Source: Eutreptiella sp. 'Long Island Sound 2002'
Taxonomy: Eukaryota; Protista; Euglenida
Direction of reading: 5' to 3'
Length of the DNA stretch: 64,000 nucleotides
Assembly (NCBI GenBank): GCA_964036045.1
Contig: OZ038379.1
Coordinates: forward strand, 15,996,001 to 16,060,000
Positions 32,341-62,297 of this stretch are shown piece by piece. Position numbers and translations under genes: made by a program. How positions within the stretch are numbered: position 1 is the stretch's first letter; every line of letters begins with the position of its first letter. The notes beneath the pieces are model-generated. The model was not told the DNA's origin. It saw only the letters and a list, made by a program, of their open reading frames with translations, and made no database searches.

Positions 32341-33099
32341 CCAAAAGGTGTGTTCAGTGTGCACACAGTGCTGACCCTGACACTTTCATTGGACTGATGT
32401 AGTCTGGCATGGGGTCAGGACCATGCTGGATATCTAAAAAACCTGACATCACGACCCGAGGTGCTTTTCATGCAGACAAAAACAGGGTGTTCTTTGGGAA
32501 AGCACTTCCGAAACGTGTGCAAACAGCTCTCTCTAAGACGAGCCTCCAATTTTCCATTGATCCCTCCTCGGAATTTCGTTCAGATTTCACGAATCTCCAA
32601 AATCAGGCTCCCCGTCCTATCACTTCTTTTATATTGCGCAAAGTTCAGAATGGACACCTGATTTTTTTCTGGTTTGGGGTATGGCATTAATGTTACCGCT
32701 GTCAATTTTGGTGCAGGTGCCTGTTGTGTGTCCAGTTATTAAAAATGACATCGGTTCATCACCTGCACCTTTGCATGCCCGAAACCATTCTTGGGACTGT
32801 GACCAGCGTCTGTTGGTCCAACAGCTTGTTGGACGGACATGCGAAGAGGAAACGACGAGTTTTTGTATGGGAATCCGTGATGGAACCGCCTGCCACTGTG
32901 CCACTGTGCGCCCTTGCTTAGCATTGTCACTCATTTTCAGCAAATGGTGCTGCATTCCAAGGGTGTTTGCAGACAGGTCAGGTAATGTCTGTCCCACAAG
33001 GCATTTGCCCTCAATACTCCTACTTCGGCCTGGGGAAATCCGCACGTTGTACACATGATAGTACTCGTAATCGCCTCTCCAATACTTTCTTTGTGCTCC

Positions 33100-33117
33100 A
33101 GTGTCGATTTTTCTTCG
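33100..33117 (+). promoter_or_regulatory. Relict (genomically fixed, decayed) spliced-leader 3' part; probable current trans-splice acceptor region
   Basis: AGTGTCGATTTTTCTTCG versus SL AGTGTCTATTTTTTTTCG is 16/18 identical and ends 13 nt before the ATG at 33131. atactttct (33082-33090) resembles the SL 5' end ACACTTTCT. Confidence 0.7.
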
Positions 33118-33130
33118 CCTTTGATCTACA

Positions 33131-34639
33131 ATGGCCAGCAACACATGTCATAGGATGTATTACACGGATCTTGAGGCAGCCACCTCTGCACCAGCTGTTA
33201 TGCCCTCTCCTCAGCACTGGTCCATCTCCCAGATTGCTGTGGCCCTCTCCGCTGTGTGTGTGGTAGGGACTGCTGCCTTTACCTTCTTTGGTTCTACATC
33301 ATCTTCAACCTCCCTCTTTACAACCCCTCCAACAGCTGCGACTACAACAGTATCCACACCAGCTGCTGCTGCACGCCTCAGGGCTCCTCCTCTGCATGCA
33401 GCTGGCCGTGGGGGGTCCATGCGTGTGGCTGGGGCTGTAGCATCCGCTGGCTTCGCAGCACCGGCTCACGCTATGGTGCATGATGATTGGGTTGCCCAAG
33501 CCTCGGCACCAGCCCCCCTTTTGGGCTTTGCTGCCACTGCAGCTGTGGCAGCTCTCGGCCTGGCCCTGTACTCAGCATTTCGTACACAGCGGCCTCAGCC
33601 TCAGCTTGCATTCGCAGGCAGCAGCACCCCGGGGCGCCCTCATACTAACTCCATGGAACCCCAGATCCCACTTGTTGCGTTGAAAGCTGAGACCACACCC
33701 CTTGAGCCGATCACTTCCGTCGAGTCACCCCCCACCGACTCCCCGACAACCCCCCTCGGTGTGGAAGTGGGCAAGTATTCCTTACAGGGTAGCAGCCGCG
33801 CGCAGAACGAGGACCGCTACGACTTAGGGGACTGCGCCAACACCCAGTTTTTGGCAGTTTTTGACGGCCACGGAGGGAATGCTGTGTCAACATGGCTGCA
33901 GAAAGAGCTGCGGCAGCGTATTGAATCGACCTTTGAAATCACCCGCCCTGACAAGTCTCTGGATCGGTGCTTCCGCCGCGCAGACAAGTTCATTTGTCAG
34001 CCGCAAAAAGGATTTCTGGGCATGGCGATGGAGAGAGGCATTGGGGGCGCCAAATGTGGATCCACTGCTGCTCTTGCCATGCTGTACGAGCAGGATGGGC
34101 AACGCAAGTTGTGCTGTGCTCACGTTGGGGACGCGCGTGTGTTGATCATCACCAAGAAAGGAGTTGATCAGTTGACCGAGGACCATGTTCCAGATCTTGA
34201 GGATGAGCGAAACCGAATCGAGTCCAAGAATCCCAATCCGTTGAACCCAATGGTCAGGTTTGAGGGCGAGACCTACCGAGTGCGGGGGATGCTGGCCCTC
34301 TCGCGTGCCTTCGGAGACGCCTACTACAAGGGCTTTTTGCAGTTCGAGGGTGTGAGTTACAAGAACACCAGGCTGGATTCCGGACACGGGGTCATTGCGG
34401 AGCCCGATGTTGAGAACATTCTCCTTGAGCCCACTGATGAGTACATCTTGGTCTGTTCGGATGGTTTGTTTGCCAATCCTGAGCGCGGAGGCGGTGGAGG
34501 GCTGAACAATGAGGACGTTGGCAAGTTGATTCACGATAATATGGACAAATCGACGGACGAGCTAGCAGAAATGCTCTGCAGGACGGCCCAAGACACAGGC
34601 AGCACTGACGACATTACAGTCTTGCTGGCGAAGCTGTAA
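33131..34639 (+). CDS. Intronless plastid-targeted PP2C/PPM phosphatase (502 aa) with a euglenid class I-type presequence
   Basis: The N-terminus has hydrophobic segment 1 (IAVALSAVCVVGTAAFTFFG), a Ser/Thr/Ala-rich transit region, hydrophobic segment 2 (LLGFAATAAVAALGLALYSAF) and then basic residues. Catalytic motifs: QNEDR, AVFDGHGG, AHVGDAR, LALSRAFGD, ILVCSDGL, TDDITV. Ends in TAA. Confidence 0.92.
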   Translation: MASNTCHRMYYTDLEAATSAPAVMPSPQHWSISQIAVALSAVCVVGTAAFTFFGSTSSSTSLFTTPPTAATTTVSTPAAAARLRAPPLHAAGRGGSMRVAGAVASAGFAAPAHAMVHDDWVAQASAPAPLLGFAATAAVAALGLALYSAFRTQRPQPQLAFAGSSTPGRPHTNSMEPQIPLVALKAETTPLEPITSVESPPTDSPTTPLGVEVGKYSLQGSSRAQNEDRYDLGDCANTQFLAVFDGHGGNAVSTWLQKELRQRIESTFEITRPDKSLDRCFRRADKFICQPQKGFLGMAMERGIGGAKCGSTAALAMLYEQDGQRKLCCAHVGDARVLIITKKGVDQLTEDHVPDLEDERNRIESKNPNPLNPMVRFEGETYRVRGMLALSRAFGDAYYKGFLQFEGVSYKNTRLDSGHGVIAEPDVENILLEPTDEYILVCSDGLFANPERGGGGGLNNEDVGKLIHDNMDKSTDELAEMLCRTAQDTGSTDDITVLLAKL

Positions 34640-55200: not shown

Positions 55201-55741
55201 TCTCTAGCCCCAAGTTTATCTCCACCTAGGGAAGTCCCCCAAGATGACCCGCTGCCCCCAACACACGACAGCGATGTGCTACCAAAATGCATTGATGCAA
55301 GTTGACCCCTCCCCCCTTTGGGCTGGACCCCCTTTTGGCCTGACATCTCATCTCATCTCATCTCATCTTGTTGTCTTCCCCCTTGTGCCCAATTATCGAT
55401 CTACTCTCACCTGACAGGACCAAACAGCCCCAGATTATCTGCCCATAACCCCGTGTCTGAACATTACCCAAAGAGAAGAACGCCACTGCAACTCACGCCC
55501 GATGCACATCATGCGGCATCAAGCGGACGCAGGATCAAGGGTTCCCTCTGCAAAACCGGAACTTGGAAGCGGTCTAATTGTTTGGACTTTTTGTGGGGCA
55601 CCACCCGTTCTTTGACGCGGAGTGCATTGGTCTTATTTGAGGGCTCATTGGGTCTGACCGTACCCCCCCCCCCCTTTTCCGCGAACAACGCCTGTGTAAG
55701 AGCAGCACGAGCTGTGGTTTCCGCAATATTTGGAATTTAGC

Positions 55742-58700
55742 TCACTTTCTGAGTGTCTATTTTTTTTCGGGTCCTTTTCCCTAAACCAGAGGCAGCCACA
55801 ACAGCACTCAACAACGACTACAAGTGCTACGCTGCGCCTGGGACCGAACCACGGATAGCTTTCATTGTCCGCAACGCTGTGGTCCCCCACATACTCGAAA
55901 CGTTATACTCACCCAATGGTTTGGCAGGGGCCATCAGGATACAGCTCCCAAACAGCCCCCGCCGCACCATTGCGTGTGTGTACTCCAAATTCAACCAACA
56001 GGACAAACAAGAGGTAGACCTATTTCTGCAGTCCCTGAGACCATACGACATCATTATGGGGGACTACAACGATGACATTTGGTCACCCAACCCGACACGC
56101 CCGTGGCAGGAAGACCTGGCCAGCGGAGTGTTCTTGGACCCTTTGCACGCTAGCAGCCAACCCCCGGACCCCCGGCAATACTATACCCGCATCCCTAGGC
56201 ATGGACGCCCACGTCGACTAGATGCCATCTTGATTAGGCAACAAATACCGAACATACCCTGGACCTACTATGACACCATACAAATGCCCATATCGGATCA
56301 TGCTTTGGTCCTGCTTGGGGTCCGATGGAGGATAGGGGTCCCCGACCCACCACGCAGAAAACCACAGCCCACAGTCGCGAAGTGGTATACAAAACAATTT
56401 CAACGGTTTACTAACACCATATCCACACTACCCATAACAAACAACGACCCACCCCTACACACGGCACGACGGATCCTGTCTGCTATAGCGCACGCGGCGC
56501 GGCCACGACGACCCACGCGCGCAAAGACAGCGACCACCGCAAGCTGGTCGGAAACCACGGACCCCAAAACACGGTTACGAGAGTACGGGGAAATACAAGA
56601 GCAACACATACGGAGACAAATCGGCAAACTGCGCCGAGCGGCAGTGCACAAATTGGGCTATTTTTATAAAATGGTCAAGAGATGGCGCACTGGACTCATA
56701 GCCTAGGACACACCGCAGCCCCCAATAGGAGGAACACAGTACGTACTCAACCACTTTGCGGGCGACCCAACATACGACGAAGACGCGTGCCGGCAACTCA
56801 TACGGAAACATGTACGGCACCGCACGTGGAACACAACGACCCCCACATACGAGGAGTACTTGCGGTGCCTTCGGGCACCAAAGAACAAATCTGCCGGACC
56901 TGACGGTGTCCCCCCACACCTGCTCCGGCACCTACCGGACCACGTGCAGCGGCAACTATACCAGGCAATCGTTGCAGTCTGGAACGGACAGCACATCCCA
57001 ATGGCTTGGCTGCAGTCCAGGGTAGTGCTCATCTATAAAAAGAAGGATCCCCAGGACCCACGAAACTACCGGCCAATCTACGTATCCACGGCCATATATA
57101 GTATACTCACACGCCTCCTCCTGACGCGTATATCGGGAGCCTTGACCCCGGGACTATTGGACATACAACACGGCGCCACACAGGGCCGAAACACCACAAC
57201 GTTAGCCACGAAACTATTAAACGACCTGCACGTTGAGGACGGGTACGTGGCCCTACTTGATGTGGCCAAAGCTTTTCCTTCAGTCCCCCGACCCATGCTG
57301 ACTGGGATCGTCAAGGAGGCAGGGGCACCAGAAAACATCATACGGATGTTGGGGGAAATATACCAGCATACACCGGCCGTACTAACCCTACACGGAAAGG
57401 ACCTACCCATACGCCCCACCAGGGGTATGAAGGAGGGGTGCCCCCTCTCCCCAACACTATTCCTCCTTTACTACGACATACTATTACGTGAAACCATGGA
57501 ACGATGCCCGGGAGCCCGACTGTACGTGTTCGTTGACGACATAGCTGTGCGTGCGCCCACGAAGGAAGCATTGCTGCACACCCTGGATACCCTCCACGAC
57601 GTGGCCCACACAATGGGGTTACGCTTCAACAAGGACAAAATTGAAGTGTGCCACTGGGCTAAGGACTACGACCTAACGCCCATCACGTGGCGGCATCAGC
57701 TCATCCCCGTGCGGCCACCTATAATGACTTACCTGGGGCATGTGCTTGCCCACCCCACACAAGAAGACACAGCATGGGACATGGTCACTACACAGCTACA
57801 CCACGACGTAGCGGCATACAGGGCCCTGCCGCTCAACGCCTACGAAAAGGTGGCTATCATCAACGCCGTCCTTATCCCCCGTTGGACGTACAGGGGACTG
57901 TTCCTCGGAAATAGGACACGAATGGCGCACTGGGACGACATACTACTGCAGTTCATCAGGGATACACCCGGGGTAGAACAACAAATGAACAAACACCGGC
58001 TGACTACCAACCTCAGTCACGGGGGACTTGGCCTACGCCAGCTGTGGTGGTCCTACATCACCCGGTGGGTCACAATTGGCCAACAGGAACTGCAGCGCAC
58101 CGGCCCTACACAACAACTCACCGCAACCCAATATAAATACATAGACGCCGTCCGAGCCCTAGGGGGCACGGTGGGTCAGCGTATATCCCAACCCCGACAA
58201 CACCGACCCTTGTCCGCGGGACTCTACGACCCGGAGAGCTCAGAGGAGGACCAGGAGACGCATGCAGGGAAGACACGGCCAGCTACCAACCGCTTAGACT
58301 ACAGCTGGATAAACCCTCCAGAGGAGCCAACCCCTGAGGAAACCCATGAGGTTTGTCAGGCACTCCCCCACCAGCAAAAACTCCACGGCATCACCATACA
58401 CTACACAGGAGAACCCACCACCACCCGGTGGTACACAGACGGGTCAAAACGACACGGACGAGCGGGAGGGGGCATCTACAACGGAACATACCGTGCGGCC
58501 TTCCGGGTGCACGGGCCACAACAGGTTCATCGGGCCGAAACGATCGCTTGCGCCTTAGCTTCAGAGCTGGCCAAGCCAGGAGACGACATTATACTAGACA
58601 ACCAGAGTGTGGTGAAGGCCACACCTATAAAACGCAAAGGAGTGGTCAAGGACCAGGACTACCGCGACATAGGGTACCTCAACTCCACCACGAAACGACT

Positions 58701-60430
58701 GACGATCCGATGGACACCAGGGCACCGCAATCTAGAACAAGCCACCACGTATAAAGACTACCAGGACATACAGGGGAACAACCACTCTGACGTCCTCGCC
58801 AATATGGGCGACAACCTGCCCATGGATTCCCAACAACCACAACCCCATGATATTGTCATCACAGGACAGATCATGCCCACGCCTGCCAAGGCATGGATCA
58901 TGCAAGTGCGTAGACAAAAACAAACACCAGATGTACACTGGGTGAGCTGGCTCCCCATGAAGCACTACTGACGGAACGCGTGGACACCCTGGCTGTGGGG
59001 GCAAGTGCGTTGGTGGGGAATGGGCGCCCCCTGGGAACGGACACCCCGCCTCTGCTCCCAGTGTGGCCACCAACACGGAGCATCGGTGCAGTCAAAACTG
59101 GCTTGCTGTCCTGCCTGGAGCGACTTCTGAGACCTGTGGCGCAAGAGCTGGACTGATTGGGCCCCATACACGCACCAATGGCTGCAAGCGGCCGACAACC
59201 AAGAACTATGGCTCTGTGTCAGGCTGCTCATACCACTATCCCTCGTCGACGCCATACCCACTGCGGAACGACACAAACTGCGAACGGAGGTGGGCCTGTT
59301 CCAGTTTCGCATGATACAGTCCGTCCAAACACTAAGACGGAAGTACGCCGACCCAACACCACAACAACCACCGTCGCCCCTGTGGCTCACCAAATACATG
59401 GCACAGGCACTTCCGCCGCGAGAAACGCCCCGAAACCTACGGAACCAAGTCGGGGCGCCCACGTGGTGCGGCGCGAAACGCAAACGTAAGGCCGAGGTCG
59501 CAACGGCTGACCCAATCGATCCCGGCCAATGGTTACAAGATGCACGCAACGTGGGCGATAGTGAGGCAGTGGCATGGTTCGTCGCACGAGCCACTAACAC
59601 AGGGGCAGACGACCACATAAAGAAACGTCAGCGCCTCAACGTTGACACACAGCGGTGGGAACAGTACAAGACGACCACAGACAGGCTGGCAAATGAACAC
59701 GCTCAGCAAGCACGGGACATATACCACAAAGCACACATGGAGGCGATGGCGAGACAACACCTGCACACCCTACACATGGGCTACACCAACGCACTGACGG
59801 CTAAAATAGACTACCACAGGCTTGTCATAAAACTAGTCGACCAACAGAGACAAACACAACGACTGCACGACACACATGCACACCTATACCAAATACGTAG
59901 GCAATGGTACGAACAAGCGAAGGACGACACAAGGATGTGGTACACTGACTCAAAACTGCTACTGATGGTCAACGACCGATACTGGAGGCCGAGCGCAGGC
60001 ACTGCCAAGCTACTTGACCTGCACCATCAACAAGCGACCTACATGTGGCAGCAGCAGACACACCTGACTGCCATGGCACAGTACTACCAAGACGCCTGCA
60101 AACACAAGACAACACAATACTGGCAAACAACCCGACCAGCCCGACAGACGATATACCTGATACGGAAGCGGCCGCGGGAGCACTGGGACCCCACCTTGTG
60201 GGAAGTCCCGTTACAACCGCTACCGAAACGCCGCAAAACGCACTGGGACCCAAATGAGTGGGAAGTACCACTGACATGACTACACCAACCTCAATGGGAA
60301 ACCATGGGGGCACAGTCACGAGCTGCAGCCCGTATGCATACCCTGGCTTCGCCGAAATCTGTATCTTACTTCGAACTTGGTCCACTGTGGCCCCTGGCAC
60401 TTATGAACTGGCCTTTTTGATAAAAAAAAA
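55742..60430 (+). mobile_element. Non-LTR retrotransposon (APE endonuclease - RT - RNase H - Cys-rich finger - long C-terminal extension), SL-capped, poly(A)-tailed, with a 17-bp TSD
   Basis: One reading frame runs 55771-60279 (about 1500 codons), broken only by in-frame stops at 56704, 58969 and 59128. APE: TIACVY, IIMGDYN, RLDAIL, ISDHALV. RT: KSAGPDGV, NYRPI, LLDVAKAFPSV, GMKEGCPLSP, FVDD, YLGH. RNase H: WYTDGS, RAET, ILDNQS, WTPGH, GNNHSDVLA. A-run at 60422-60430. TSD AATATTTGGAATTTAGC at 55725-55741 and 60431-60447. Confidence 0.95.
55743..55769 (+). other. Intact euglenid spliced-leader exon sequence at the 5' end of a retroposed element
   Basis: 55744-55769 reads ACTTTCTGAGTGTCTATTTTTTTTCG, the 26-nt SL of Euglena as I recall it. 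The preceding C extends the match to the longer ACAC-starting form recalled for Eutreptiella, with T in place of its first A. It is followed by GGTCC, not by the GT of an SL-RNA intron. Confidence 0.95.
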
Positions 60431-62297
60431 AATATTTGGAATTTAGCAGTTCCCTTTTGTAGTTGTCCATGAAGATCGAGTTTTTTCCTGTTGGGGCATG
60501 GGATGGCATATTGGGGTGGCTGCTTACTGTCCTGCCCCGTTTGCCCTCCCCTGTGCCTCCACAGACGTGGTTGTGGGGCCCTCAATGATGGTTCGCTGTG
60601 CTCTCACCGCTTGTGTCTTCTCAGGGTGCCCGGAAGCAACAGGACGCGTTGTTCCCATCATTTGCACTGTCTTTACATTTTTTCTCCTGCAAGAGGGGAG
60701 GGGGAGGGCCACCACTTCTTGGAGCGCAGATCCAGTGCCATGTAGTTGACGCCCCCGCGGCGATGGGGCTGGCACGCCCTTGCCTACGCACAGCGCGCCT
60801 GTGTAATGGTTGCCTGACGGCAATTAACAATGTGAGATTACACGTTTGTAAGCTGAAGGGGCTGGGTCATGCCTGTGCAGAGTAGGTTCTGCTCACGCAA
60901 CATTGTGTTTGATACTGCAACCCAGTTCCATTTATTTTTGATTTACATTTTACCGAATCTGCGGTCACAGGGCCCAACTCCCTCAAGAATTGCCTGCTTG
61001 TCTGCGCATGGGATCCCTGTCTGATGGTCGTTTTCCATGACTTAGGTTGTGTTTGTACATGAGGGAGCGTTGGGGGGGTTTTACATTCCAGAAGCATCTA
61101 CTGGTTTGATGGCACACGTAACACGTTTATCTGTCCACCATCGATCGAGGTGCCATTGAGGTGCCATCATGGCAGCTCTTGCGACAAAGCGATTGCTGCT
61201 GCATTTTCTTGCACACTGCGAGTGTTACCTAGCGTGCCATTTCATTCTGCGGGCTCTCTCCATGGAGGGCCAGCCCAGCGCCTAGTGCACAGGGCTCTGA
61301 GGTTGTTCTGCATGATACACGTGGTGGCACTCACTGTGCTGTTCCGATGGACTGCCGGGCCACGGGGGGGCGCCCAGGTGGAGTCCGTGACCCCCCCCTC
61401 CTGGGGGCCAAAATGTTTAAAAGGTCCCGACCACAGTACAGTCCAATATGGAGAAGTTGGGGGGCGCCGCAGGCGCCGGAAAATTTTGGTGCCCCATTTG
61501 AAGGGGTTGGTAAAACCGGTCACCCCGTGTGTTTATACTCAACATGAGATGAACAACAAGGTTTCCTTGGGGCTGAGTGGACCGGGAGGTGGCTGCACAG
61601 GGTGCGTGGGTCCAAATATTCCCTGGACACCACGGCGGCTCGAAGAAGGGGGTGGTTTTTGGTCCCCCCCCTCTTTGAGGGGCCAAAATGTTTAACGGGT
61701 GTCGGGGTCAACGACTGCACTTGGGCGCCCCCCATGTGCCGGGCATTGCTGCATATGCACACCAGGACGTGCCTGGGAGGCCTGCCTTCGGACCTACTTG
61801 TGGTCAGCATGCAGGGCTCCCTGAGGACTACACGTGGAATGACTGACCGATGCTGTCAAACATCCCCTGCACACTGGCGTTTTGGGCGCCTTGTGTTCCC
61901 ATTCGGCGCCACAAAGTCGCTTCAAATCAAGTGGAACCTGTGGCCGACCTGTCGGTTCTTGCTGCTGTGCATTTCCCCTTCTTCCATCACGTATTTTTTT
62001 TTTTTACTAGATGTGCACTGATTTGCTCCCCTTTGTTGCATGGCCCACCTTTTACATTGATTGGTGCTTTCTTGCGCATTTGCTGTTGTGACATTGACTC
62101 CGCCCAGATCCACCCTGATGCGATTTAGTCTTTTCGACTCTCCCATTTATTCCTGATTCCTTCTTTTCCTGCACACATAAGACATTCGAACCATGATGCA
62201 TGTTTTTTTGATTTTGCTTTGGTGTGGCAATTTTTACCGCGACACCATACCTCTGATTAGAGACATGTCCAGTGTCCTGCAGTGTCCAGTTTCCCTT

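Follow-up and report, generated by a model that had tools for sequence, protein, structure and literature searches.

The window, as we call the whole 64,000-nt stretch of Eutreptiella DNA analysed here, contains an insert enclosed by a 17-bp target site duplication (TSD). It begins with the dinucleotide TC, after which come an exact copy of the euglenid spliced leader (SL, 26 nt), an APE-RT LINE segment of 4.65 kb and an A-run (Table 1). The 17-mer AATATTTGGAATTTAGC has exactly two matches in the window (0.01 expected by chance), and the SL, which is the same string as the E. gracilis leader quoted in PMC6242988, has one exact match (0 expected); the order of parts described by the sequence-only reading, an earlier annotation made from the letters alone, is thus borne out. 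The leader stops exactly at the exon boundary, as it would be left by splicing. It lies inside the TSD and is followed by GGTCC rather than by the SL-RNA intron, in agreement with the earlier statement that no GT comes after it. In the TC directly 5' of the leader, C is the base that precedes the SL in SL-RNA genes and T replaces the A of the gene.

Table 1. Parts of the insertion and features of its LINE, in window coordinates.
Feature	Position	Strand	Evidence or remark
5' TSD copy, 17 bp	55725..55741	+	exact repeat of 60431-60447
TC, 2 bases between TSD and 26-nt SL	55742..55743	+	placed within the insert by the TSD
Complete 26-nt euglenid SL exon	55744..55769	+	exact match; followed by GG, not by the gene intron GTATATACTCGC
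GGTCCT, 6 nt of neither SL nor LINE family	55770..55775	+	comparison of copies
3' 4.65 kb of the ~14-kb LINE family	55776..60421	+	truncated APE, RT, RNase H-like region, C-terminal region, 3' UTR
APE endonuclease remnant	55834..56301	+	Pfam PF03372 Exo_endo_phos, E 4.4e-6, profile positions 66-225 of 225
In-frame stop TAG, private	56704..56706	+	C>T relative to all 23 aligned copies
Reverse transcriptase domain	57037..57741	+	Pfam PF00078 RVT_1, E 4.7e-25
RNase H-like region, weak	58423..58803	+	Pfam PF00075, E 0.007, 17 bits against a cut-off of 25.8
In-frame stop, private	58969..58971	+	A at 58969 in all other contigs
In-frame stop	59128..59130	+	absent from every contig covering it; X3, X6 and X13 contigs have G at 59130, X1 has no depth at this place
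A-run, 9 A's (11 with the first two TSD bases)	60422..60430	+	flanks of other copies diverge directly after it
3' TSD copy	60431..60447	+	exact repeat of 55725-55741

Both outer joints are backed by independent contigs of single-copy depth from three runs belonging to two studies: on one side contigs of all three runs span the boundary between unique flank and SL, and on the other they lead from the LINE 3' end through the TSD into unique flank. On the other hand, the SL-LINE joint (55769/55770) is bridged by none of the listed independent contigs. No empty target site was found elsewhere in the assembly with up to 3 mismatches allowed.

The LINE occupies a single frame (55753-60279, 1510 codons) interrupted by three in-frame stops. 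Of the APE-RT-RNase H frame announced earlier, the RT and APE domains are indeed present, but the frame is broken, the APE domain is N-terminally truncated and the RNase H-like region, in which a WYTDGSK motif is visible, falls below the Pfam cut-off. The APE remnant lacks the N-terminal third of the domain including the catalytic-Glu motif IQEYH; other copies of the family continue upstream through this motif and encode GIQEYHPGFPKPE just 5' of the position of the joint. Among the solved structures in the PDB, the RT is closest to that of Bombyx R2 (7e-22), ahead of human LINE-1 ORF2p (4e-13), and the closest non-self database proteins are unnamed and only ~25-39% identical. A non-LTR-type RT, an APE domain N-terminal to it, a TSD and an A tail together define an element of the APE-type LINE class. 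The family comprises at least 395 candidate copies genome-wide, and over the stretch 55776-57870 (up to ~2.1 kb) the window copy is 98.0-99.2% identical to 27 others; its 3' terminus recurs in a second copy (beside L062). Since it departs from the family majority at only 10 of 2095 positions and carries private stops, comparison of the copies indicates that the window insertion is a young, dead-on-arrival member of an APE-type LINE family of ~14 kb.

The window copy lacks the first 9-11 kb of this family and starts within the endonuclease domain. Family sequence reaches at least 7.4 kb 5' of the SL-LINE joint, and the copies differ in their 5' truncation points, with inverted 5' segments in two of them (L063 and L067). 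The claim that the RNA of the element had been copied to its own extreme 5' end must therefore be abandoned, as the family extends ~9-11 kb further upstream. The leader is also not joined directly to the LINE, as had been supposed, because 6 nt belonging to neither part (GGTCCT) intervene. In 24 other copies that contain the anchor, CACCCAGG or a one-base variant of it precedes TTTCCCTAAACC; a source locus with GGTCCT+TTTCCCTAAACC was not found in the assembly, and GGTCCT+TTTCCCTAAACCAGAGG (with at most 1 mismatch), like any copy with four T's after a base other than G, occurs in the window only. No AG directly precedes the joint in the family sequence; use of the nearest one would yield SL+GTTTCCC, 5 nt shorter. 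We rejected GGTCCT as a small upstream exon, as its three occurrences in 7.4 kb are close to the number expected by chance and none follows an AG. A jump to the 5' end of the element itself was likewise rejected, since it predicts SL+GTGCTA, which does not fit.

The leader of the window copy has a counterpart at the true 5' end of the family, where the results rest on coordinates and short matched strings from pattern searches. In all copies found to contain the start of ORF1 (~18 places), an SL or a slightly mutated SL end is followed by a decayed older SL and then by the ORF1 ATG. Wherever the relict is exact, an SL end precedes it (11 of 11 copies, 7 with the exact end and 4 with a slightly changed one), and the combination of SL, relict and TCCATGGAAGAC has 12 matches at 11 places. 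Two of these 12 have an additional middle layer, an SL truncated behind its internal AG, which is exact in one case and lacks a T in the other: a three-layer stack of SL, TGTCTATTTTTTTTCG and relict lies at C1:38085185, and a similar one at C14:4915578. This layering indicates that SLs already written into the genome at the start of the element serve again as splice acceptors in later rounds. One locus with TC+SL (L027) runs on into sequence that lies ~294 nt upstream of the family 5' region in at least 13 loci, and since its flank is unique in the genome, the family repeat begins at the SL. In a copy on C2, the SL at 8155585 is linked to an APE region at 8143802 (L052) that is 99% identical to the window copy. 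Full-length LINE RNA would be expected to begin with SL, GTGCTATTTCTTCG and TCCATGG. A monomer of ~100 nt (GCCACACGCATGGAAC) was considered as the 5' end of the family and proved not to be it; no SL was found directly before it. Apart from a weak RING finger, no Pfam domain was detected in the family ORF1 or in three further repeat families that start with an SL (A, B and C); these three have no similarity to the window LINE.

The leader is abundant in this genome far beyond its genes. Out of 2588 exact SLs only ~738 belong to SL-RNA genes, which lie in arrays elsewhere in the genome, leaving ~1850 non-gene copies. The base at -1 is C in 2387 of the 2588 (92%), and TC precedes the SL in 617. 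At -2, non-gene copies have T (~37%) or A (~35%), and the genes have AC, with GGTAC immediately before the SL in the eight genes compared (L001-L008); the SL primer in PMC5654406 likewise begins with ACAC. These figures agree with the earlier suggestion that the odd first base T of the window copy is a misreading near the cap. Cellular mRNAs have also given rise to SL-capped retrocopies, e.g. of a C-type lectin (L009) and, within the window at 33084-34639, of PP2C, so mobilisation in trans does occur. Stacked relict SLs cut at the internal AG are present in L010 and L069 as well. No TSDs were found within the 1.5 kb examined around 22 other SL copies. The ~1850 non-gene SLs and the SL start of full-length copies of the window LINE family together argue that target-primed reverse transcription regularly writes SL-capped LINE RNA back into this genome. 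What is new is the SL, intact or with a slightly mutated end, before a relict SL at the start of all ORF1-start copies found, the third SL layer in two of them and the ~1850 SLs outside the genes.

The window insert was made by a single event of target-primed reverse transcription, with its 17-bp TSD, A tail and canonical family 3' end; the integration mode claimed earlier stands, as the SL lies within the TSD of one insertion. The cDNA ended on the complete SL in a 28-nt form, the first base of which was read as T. We regard it as highly probable that this SL stems from an RNA that had been spliced, and that SL and LINE arrived together in one insertion. The earlier proposal that the RNA of the window element was itself trans-spliced gains partial support from the SL start of full-length family copies. 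However, as the SL sits within the APE domain, not directly after a family AG and with 6 foreign nt between, an extra event is needed. This event is either aberrant splicing or a template switch of the RT, and the two explain the data about equally well.

We tentatively put forward, though with rather less than full conviction and short of an even chance, that an aberrant trans-spliced short RNA was copied in trans to its 5' end. The mRNA of the family would normally be capped by SL trans-splicing; here the template would have been an aberrant short RNA rather than the full-length mRNA, with the SL exon joined by the spliceosome 6 nt upstream of a site within the endonuclease region. The likeliest substrate would be RNA that had read through an older copy truncated at its 5' end, the flank of which supplied the acceptor AG; the RT of the family would have copied this SL-bearing RNA in trans to the very 5' end. 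It tells against this route that an acceptor merely 6 nt from the truncation point is a coincidence, that the putative source locus is missing from the assembly, and that the joint lacks an AG and GGTCCT never follows one upstream. The last of these features suits a template switch better, in which the cDNA stopped in the APE region and the RT switched to the 5' end of a second RNA with an SL and copied it to the cap, as happens when U6/LINE-1 chimeras form in mammals; we consider this a somewhat less probable but serious contender. The architecture is that of known chimeras, in which the whole 5' end of a second RNA precedes a LINE truncated at its own 5' end, with one TSD and one A tail; U6/LINE-1 and mRNA/LINE-1 examples are on record (10.1101/2025.02.02.635956). 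The 6 foreign nt resemble jump filler. The donor could be an mRNA starting with SL+GGTCCT, a short capped fragment, or a free SL exon to which a few untemplated nucleotides had been added. Nonetheless, if the donor was an mRNA of normal length, a landing just 6 nt from its SL is improbable, a free SL exon is only a transient intermediate, and the SL-RNA itself is ruled out because its intron is absent. Two other retrocopies considered as donors, L069 (SL+GGTCCT+TTGG) and L071 (SL+GGTCCT+GTTTC), each fall one base short of an explanation by microhomology, and as neither fits exactly both were rejected.

The remaining explanations carry little weight. A full-length SL-capped insertion could have lost ~9-11 kb from behind the SL to the APE region by a later genomic deletion repaired with 6 nt of filler; the SL does start full-length copies and end joining typically leaves filler bases, but the 5' breakpoint must have hit within one base of the SL exon boundary in ~14 kb, the relict SL would have had to vanish entirely, and the copy is very young, all of which makes such a history very improbable. 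Slightly less credible still is a chimera of the assembly, with the SL coming from another short retrocopy or from contaminating cDNA: the unbridged joint and the high copy number of both SL and LINE leave room for it, yet one half of an exact 17-bp TSD adjoins the SL and its other half the A tail of the LINE, and contigs of single-copy depth bear out the two outer joints. As for an element specific for SL genes, like SLACS/CZAR/CRE or NeSL, that inserted in an SL-RNA gene, its sole support is that an SL adjoins a non-LTR element. Neither the flank upstream nor the bases that follow the SL resemble those of the eight SL-RNA genes compared, the SL is inside the TSD, an APE domain is present and the genes lie in arrays elsewhere; the flank comparison and the location of the arrays refute such an insertion, and its probability is negligible.

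Whatever the extra event was, aberrant trans-splicing of a short RNA, which we favor, or a template switch, the family itself may carry an SL copy as a built-in, self-renewing 5' module, a proposal to which we give an even chance. The internal AG of the genomic leader would serve as a trans-splice acceptor, turning read-through transcripts into capped LINE mRNA without a promoter of their own, and every retrotransposition would write a new leader back in. The same machinery would tag and copy host mRNAs and occasionally produce leader-to-interior chimeras such as the window copy. The SL start of the family ties the life cycle of a retrotransposon to SL trans-splicing in a euglenozoan, and the SL is a natural tag on every RNA-derived insertion in a 2.3-Gb genome, so that the birth of retrocopies, LINE activity and gene duplication driven by retroposition become directly countable. 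The bases kept before the leader, C followed outwards by T or A, are informative about where the SL RNA truly begins and about its probably modified first nucleotide.

Non-LTR elements adjoining SL sequence are known in trypanosomatids (SLACS/CZAR/CRE) and nematodes (NeSL), where they insert site-specifically into SL-RNA genes by means of a restriction-like endonuclease. The window element, in contrast, carries an APE domain, its targets are dispersed, and the SL belongs to the insert itself. The ingi/L1Tc elements of trypanosomatids possess an RNase H-like region. They are, like the element described here, APE-RT non-LTR elements in trans-splicing euglenozoans (PMC1874656, PMC8190864), but L1Tc relies on the internal promoter Pr77 and its transcripts are unspliced (PMC1874656, PMC8190864), whereas full-length copies of the Eutreptiella family begin with the SL. 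With the mammalian U6/LINE-1 and mRNA/LINE-1 chimeras (10.1101/2025.02.02.635956) the window copy shares a foreign 5' end on a 5'-truncated LINE, one TSD, one A tail and a joint without splice signal; its 5' part is, however, a trans-spliced leader of 26-28 nt with 6 nt and not a whole snRNA, and as the mRNA of the LINE also bears the SL, the splicing route is equally possible.

A close parallel is provided by the retrogenes with relict SLs of dinoflagellates (PMC6050394, PMC5585692, PMC3942190). We found no published description of SL-capped LINE copies in euglenids, and the phenomenon described for dinoflagellates only. There, too, RNA-derived copies carry an SL encoded in the genome at their 5' end, and recycling of DinoSL through repeated trans-splicing and retroposition is recorded in stacked relicts cut at the internal AG. 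The window copy has the genomic leader 5' of an RNA-derived copy with no SL-RNA intron after it, and the stacked leaders occur in its family but not in the copy itself. As such stacks show repeated cycles and had earlier been described only in dinoflagellates, the trait has arisen independently in two trans-splicing lineages. Eutreptiella differs in its phylum and its leader and in the clear LINE hallmarks (TSD, A tail) of its copies, and in that the retrotransposon itself, and not just host genes, has the leader and its relict as a regular 5' end.

The insert reads, from 5' to 3', duplication, TC, spliced leader (SL), GGTCCT, LINE sequence, A-run and duplication (see the table for coordinates). 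The 17-bp duplication AATATTTGGAATTTAGC occurs in the window only at these two borders (about 0.01 matches expected by chance, two mismatches allowed), and the 26-nt leader ACTTTCTGAGTGTCTATTTTTTTTCG, identical to the invariant E. gracilis SL string quoted in PMC6242988, occurs once. These matches confirm the order observed in the sequence-only reading, namely TSD, TC plus exact SL, LINE, A-run and the same TSD. Independent sequence is provided by Logan contigs from three runs in two studies. Contigs of single-copy depth cross the duplication and TC, linking the unique 5' flank to the leader as far as 55766-55768; further contigs cross the A-run and the duplication, linking the LINE 3' end (60403-60405) to the 3' flank. 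No listed Logan contig bridges the joint between the leader and the LINE, both sides of which are high-copy repeats. Since the leader end and the A-tail end carry matching duplications and thus belong to a single insertion, an assembly chimera is unlikely, though less securely so for the interior of the insert. A metatranscriptome run contains LINE-family contigs at 97-99% identity, which is no proof of transcription.

Features in the window and at other leader or LINE loci (G000, genome assembly; C, contig; L, locus)
Feature	Location	Strand	Remarks
Duplication	window 55725-55741 and 60431-60447		17 bp
Leader	window 55744-55769		26 nt
Open frame of window copy	window 55753-60279		stops at 56704, 58969, 59128
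Endonuclease (APE)	window copy		Pfam profile positions 66-225 of 225 only
Reverse transcriptase (RT)	window copy		Pfam, E 4.7e-25
RNase H	window copy		Pfam, weak, E 0.007, below cut-off
A-run	window copy		9 A's; 11 with first two bases of 3' repeat; sequence reading
Decayed leader	window 33084-33117		ACTTTCT..AGTGTCGATTTTTCTTCG; 13 nt before ATG of PP2C frame
PP2C phosphatase frame	within window 33084-34639		uninterrupted, 502 aa; PF00481, E 6.9e-36
SL-RNA gene arrays, among others	G000: C1 0-0.46 Mb; C3 164.0-164.7 Mb; C7 99.75-99.85 Mb; C9 0-1.6 Mb		
L009	G000:C1:836637	-	leader, 12 nt, ATG of 445-codon open frame; C-type lectin PF00059, E 6.9e-8
L010	G000:C1:1042749	-	SL + AC + near-complete second SL + AGTGTCTATTTTTTTTCG
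L069	G000:C1:62485367-62485434	-	two complete SLs, duplicated 16-mer between
Leader-started repeat family	L015, L016, L022, L024, L029 (plus L023, L030)		
Leader-started repeat family	L011, L012, L025, L026		
Leader-started repeat family	L017, L019		
LINE monomers, ~100 nt	L065 element positions 481 and 580; G000:C11:17532979-17533280		

The 2.28-Gb genome contains 2588 exact leaders. Among the first thirty leader sites, eight are true SL-RNA genes, which have in common the upstream sequence ..GAGAGGTAC and the intron GTATATACTCGCTCC.., and the combination of leader and intron recurs at 738 sites genome-wide, clustered in arrays on few contigs. These approximately 738 genes form loose arrays with neighbours about 9-90 kb apart and no tight tandem repeats; some have variant introns and some lack the GT (e.g. 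L001, SL+GATTATTTCG). The window leader can be ruled out as an SL-RNA gene, since its flanks and the bases that follow it differ from those of the genes, which upholds the earlier exclusion of SL-gene targeting; an element specific for SL genes is excluded by the flank, post-leader and array tests.

For the LINE part, at least 395 candidate relatives were found genome-wide, the best 40 of which are 98-99% identical across the first 600 nt, while 27 copies aligned across 1.5-2.1 kb show 98.0-99.2% identity. None of the 24 fetched copies bearing the anchor starts where the window copy does: all read on upstream, through ..GGCATCCAGGAGTATCACCCAGG|TTTCCCTAAACC, which encodes the endonuclease's catalytic IQEYH motif. 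In eight copies fetched further, homology extends up to 7.4 kb upstream with varied 5' truncation points, and at least 40 copies extend past 7.4 kb. Two of the eight carry inverted 5' segments, a mark of twin priming. The upstream continuation of the other copies indicates that the window copy is a 5'-truncated, endonuclease-dead family member; its reading as the complete RNA of the element was wrong. Compared with the majority of 23 aligned copies, it has changes at only 10 of 2095 positions (median 14 for the other copies), and its three in-frame stops are private changes; it is a young copy derived from an intact source.

Our results on the 5' end of the family rest on coordinates and short strings printed by pattern searches. 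A leader end followed within 30 nt by TCCATGGAAGAC was matched 12 times in 11 places, mostly as SL + GTGCTATTTCTTCG + TCC ATG, where GTGCTATTTCTTCG is a decayed copy (relict) of the leader's 3' part. Two of the 12 matches possess a third layer: at C1:38085185 the SL is followed by TGTCTATTTTTTTTCG, a leader cut exactly after its own AG, and then by the relict, and at C14:4915578 this layer is shorter by one T. Wherever the exact relict and ATG occur together (11 copies), the end of a leader stands in front (seven exact, two with an extra T, two mutated). Downstream of its leader, L027 (a TC + SL site at C1:22768903) has 85-93% matches in at least 13 loci, the family locus L065 itself among them; these lie about 294 nt upstream of the 5' region of the family and place its full length at about 14 kb. 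The flank in front of the L027 leader has no second occurrence in the genome, so the leader marks the start of the repeat. A single copy on C2 joins all parts: leader (8155585), L027-like sequence (8154212), L065-like sequence (8153320) and the endonuclease region L052 (8143802), itself 99% identical to the window copy. Together, the stacks of leaders and relicts, L027 and the C2 copy indicate that the mRNA of the family is regularly SL-capped and that the cap-proximal leader is copied back along with it; at the family's 5' end, genomic leaders have been used again as acceptors. The leader-started copies bear out the pathway proposed in the sequence-only reading, i.e. the writing back of SL-capped LINE RNA.

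The 5' region of the LINE also comprises tandem ~100-nt monomers, of which each copy has two to five, every one with an ATG; mouse L1 has a comparable monomeric 5' region. In L066, a 5'-truncated LINE copy is preceded, at a distance of about 300 nt, by a 41-nt satellite (positions 1-292; GGAATATTTATCCACAGG, a G-run and TACACCACCTCAGT; higher-order period 119).

Position -1 relative to the 26-nt leader is C in 2387 of the 2588 leaders (92%) and in about 89% of those outside SL-RNA genes; TC stands in front of 617 leaders, and AC, then a non-G base, is found for 415. At -2, T and A in roughly equal shares account for roughly 70% of the non-gene copies. SL-RNA genes have AC at these two positions, and the SL primer in PMC5654406 starts with ACAC. 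Given the C at -1 and the T or A at -2, the retro-copied leader is effectively 27-28 nt long, with an ambiguous first base (A or T). The T before the window leader belongs to the insert, because the duplication delimits the latter. We infer that a modified first nucleotide misread by RT, or an untemplated A on the cDNA, would explain the A/T mixture.

The joint between leader and LINE in the window copy is unusual. The six bases GGTCCT that separate the leader from family sequence are absent at this joint from every other copy examined, no locus in the assembly bears the joint as a potential source, and within the element GGTCCT never follows AG. The nearest AG of the family would yield SL+GTTTCCC, five bases shorter, and a source in the 5' end of the element itself does not match either. 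Two other retrocopies begin with SL+GGTCCT; each is one base off the observed string, and they were rejected as template-switch donors. The leader may have been spliced onto a short, aberrant RNA with LINE sequence in it, or RT may have jumped from the LINE RNA to a different RNA at its leader-bearing 5' end. Either route would leave the leader ending exactly at the exon boundary, and either requires a coincidence of a few bases. Much less likely is that a later genomic deletion produced the joint, because its breakpoint would need to fall on the exon boundary.

Leaders are found on other sequences as well. L009 represents a host mRNA copied together with its leader, and the PP2C frame with its decayed leader looks like an older leader-tagged retrogene. 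A metatranscriptome contig joins the genomic flank of L069 to the leader. In three repeat families the leader is the exact starting point; their upstream flanks are unrelated, and their open frames exceed 480 aa. They show no Pfam domain and no relation to the window LINE.

The window copy is one aberrant instance of a genome-wide pathway. In our full-text literature search, leader-capped retrocopies or LINEs were nowhere described for euglenids, nor are they mentioned in the keyword-matched passages of two Euglena genome papers; a pathway that writes a LINE family and host mRNAs back with the spliced leader is apparently unpublished. The trypanosome L1Tc has an internal promoter and unspliced RNA (PMC1874656). 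There is established precedent in mammals for chimeric LINE retrocopies (10.1101/2025.02.02.635956) and in dinoflagellates for retrogenes that bear a leader tag and relict leaders (PMC6050394, PMC5585692, PMC3942190).
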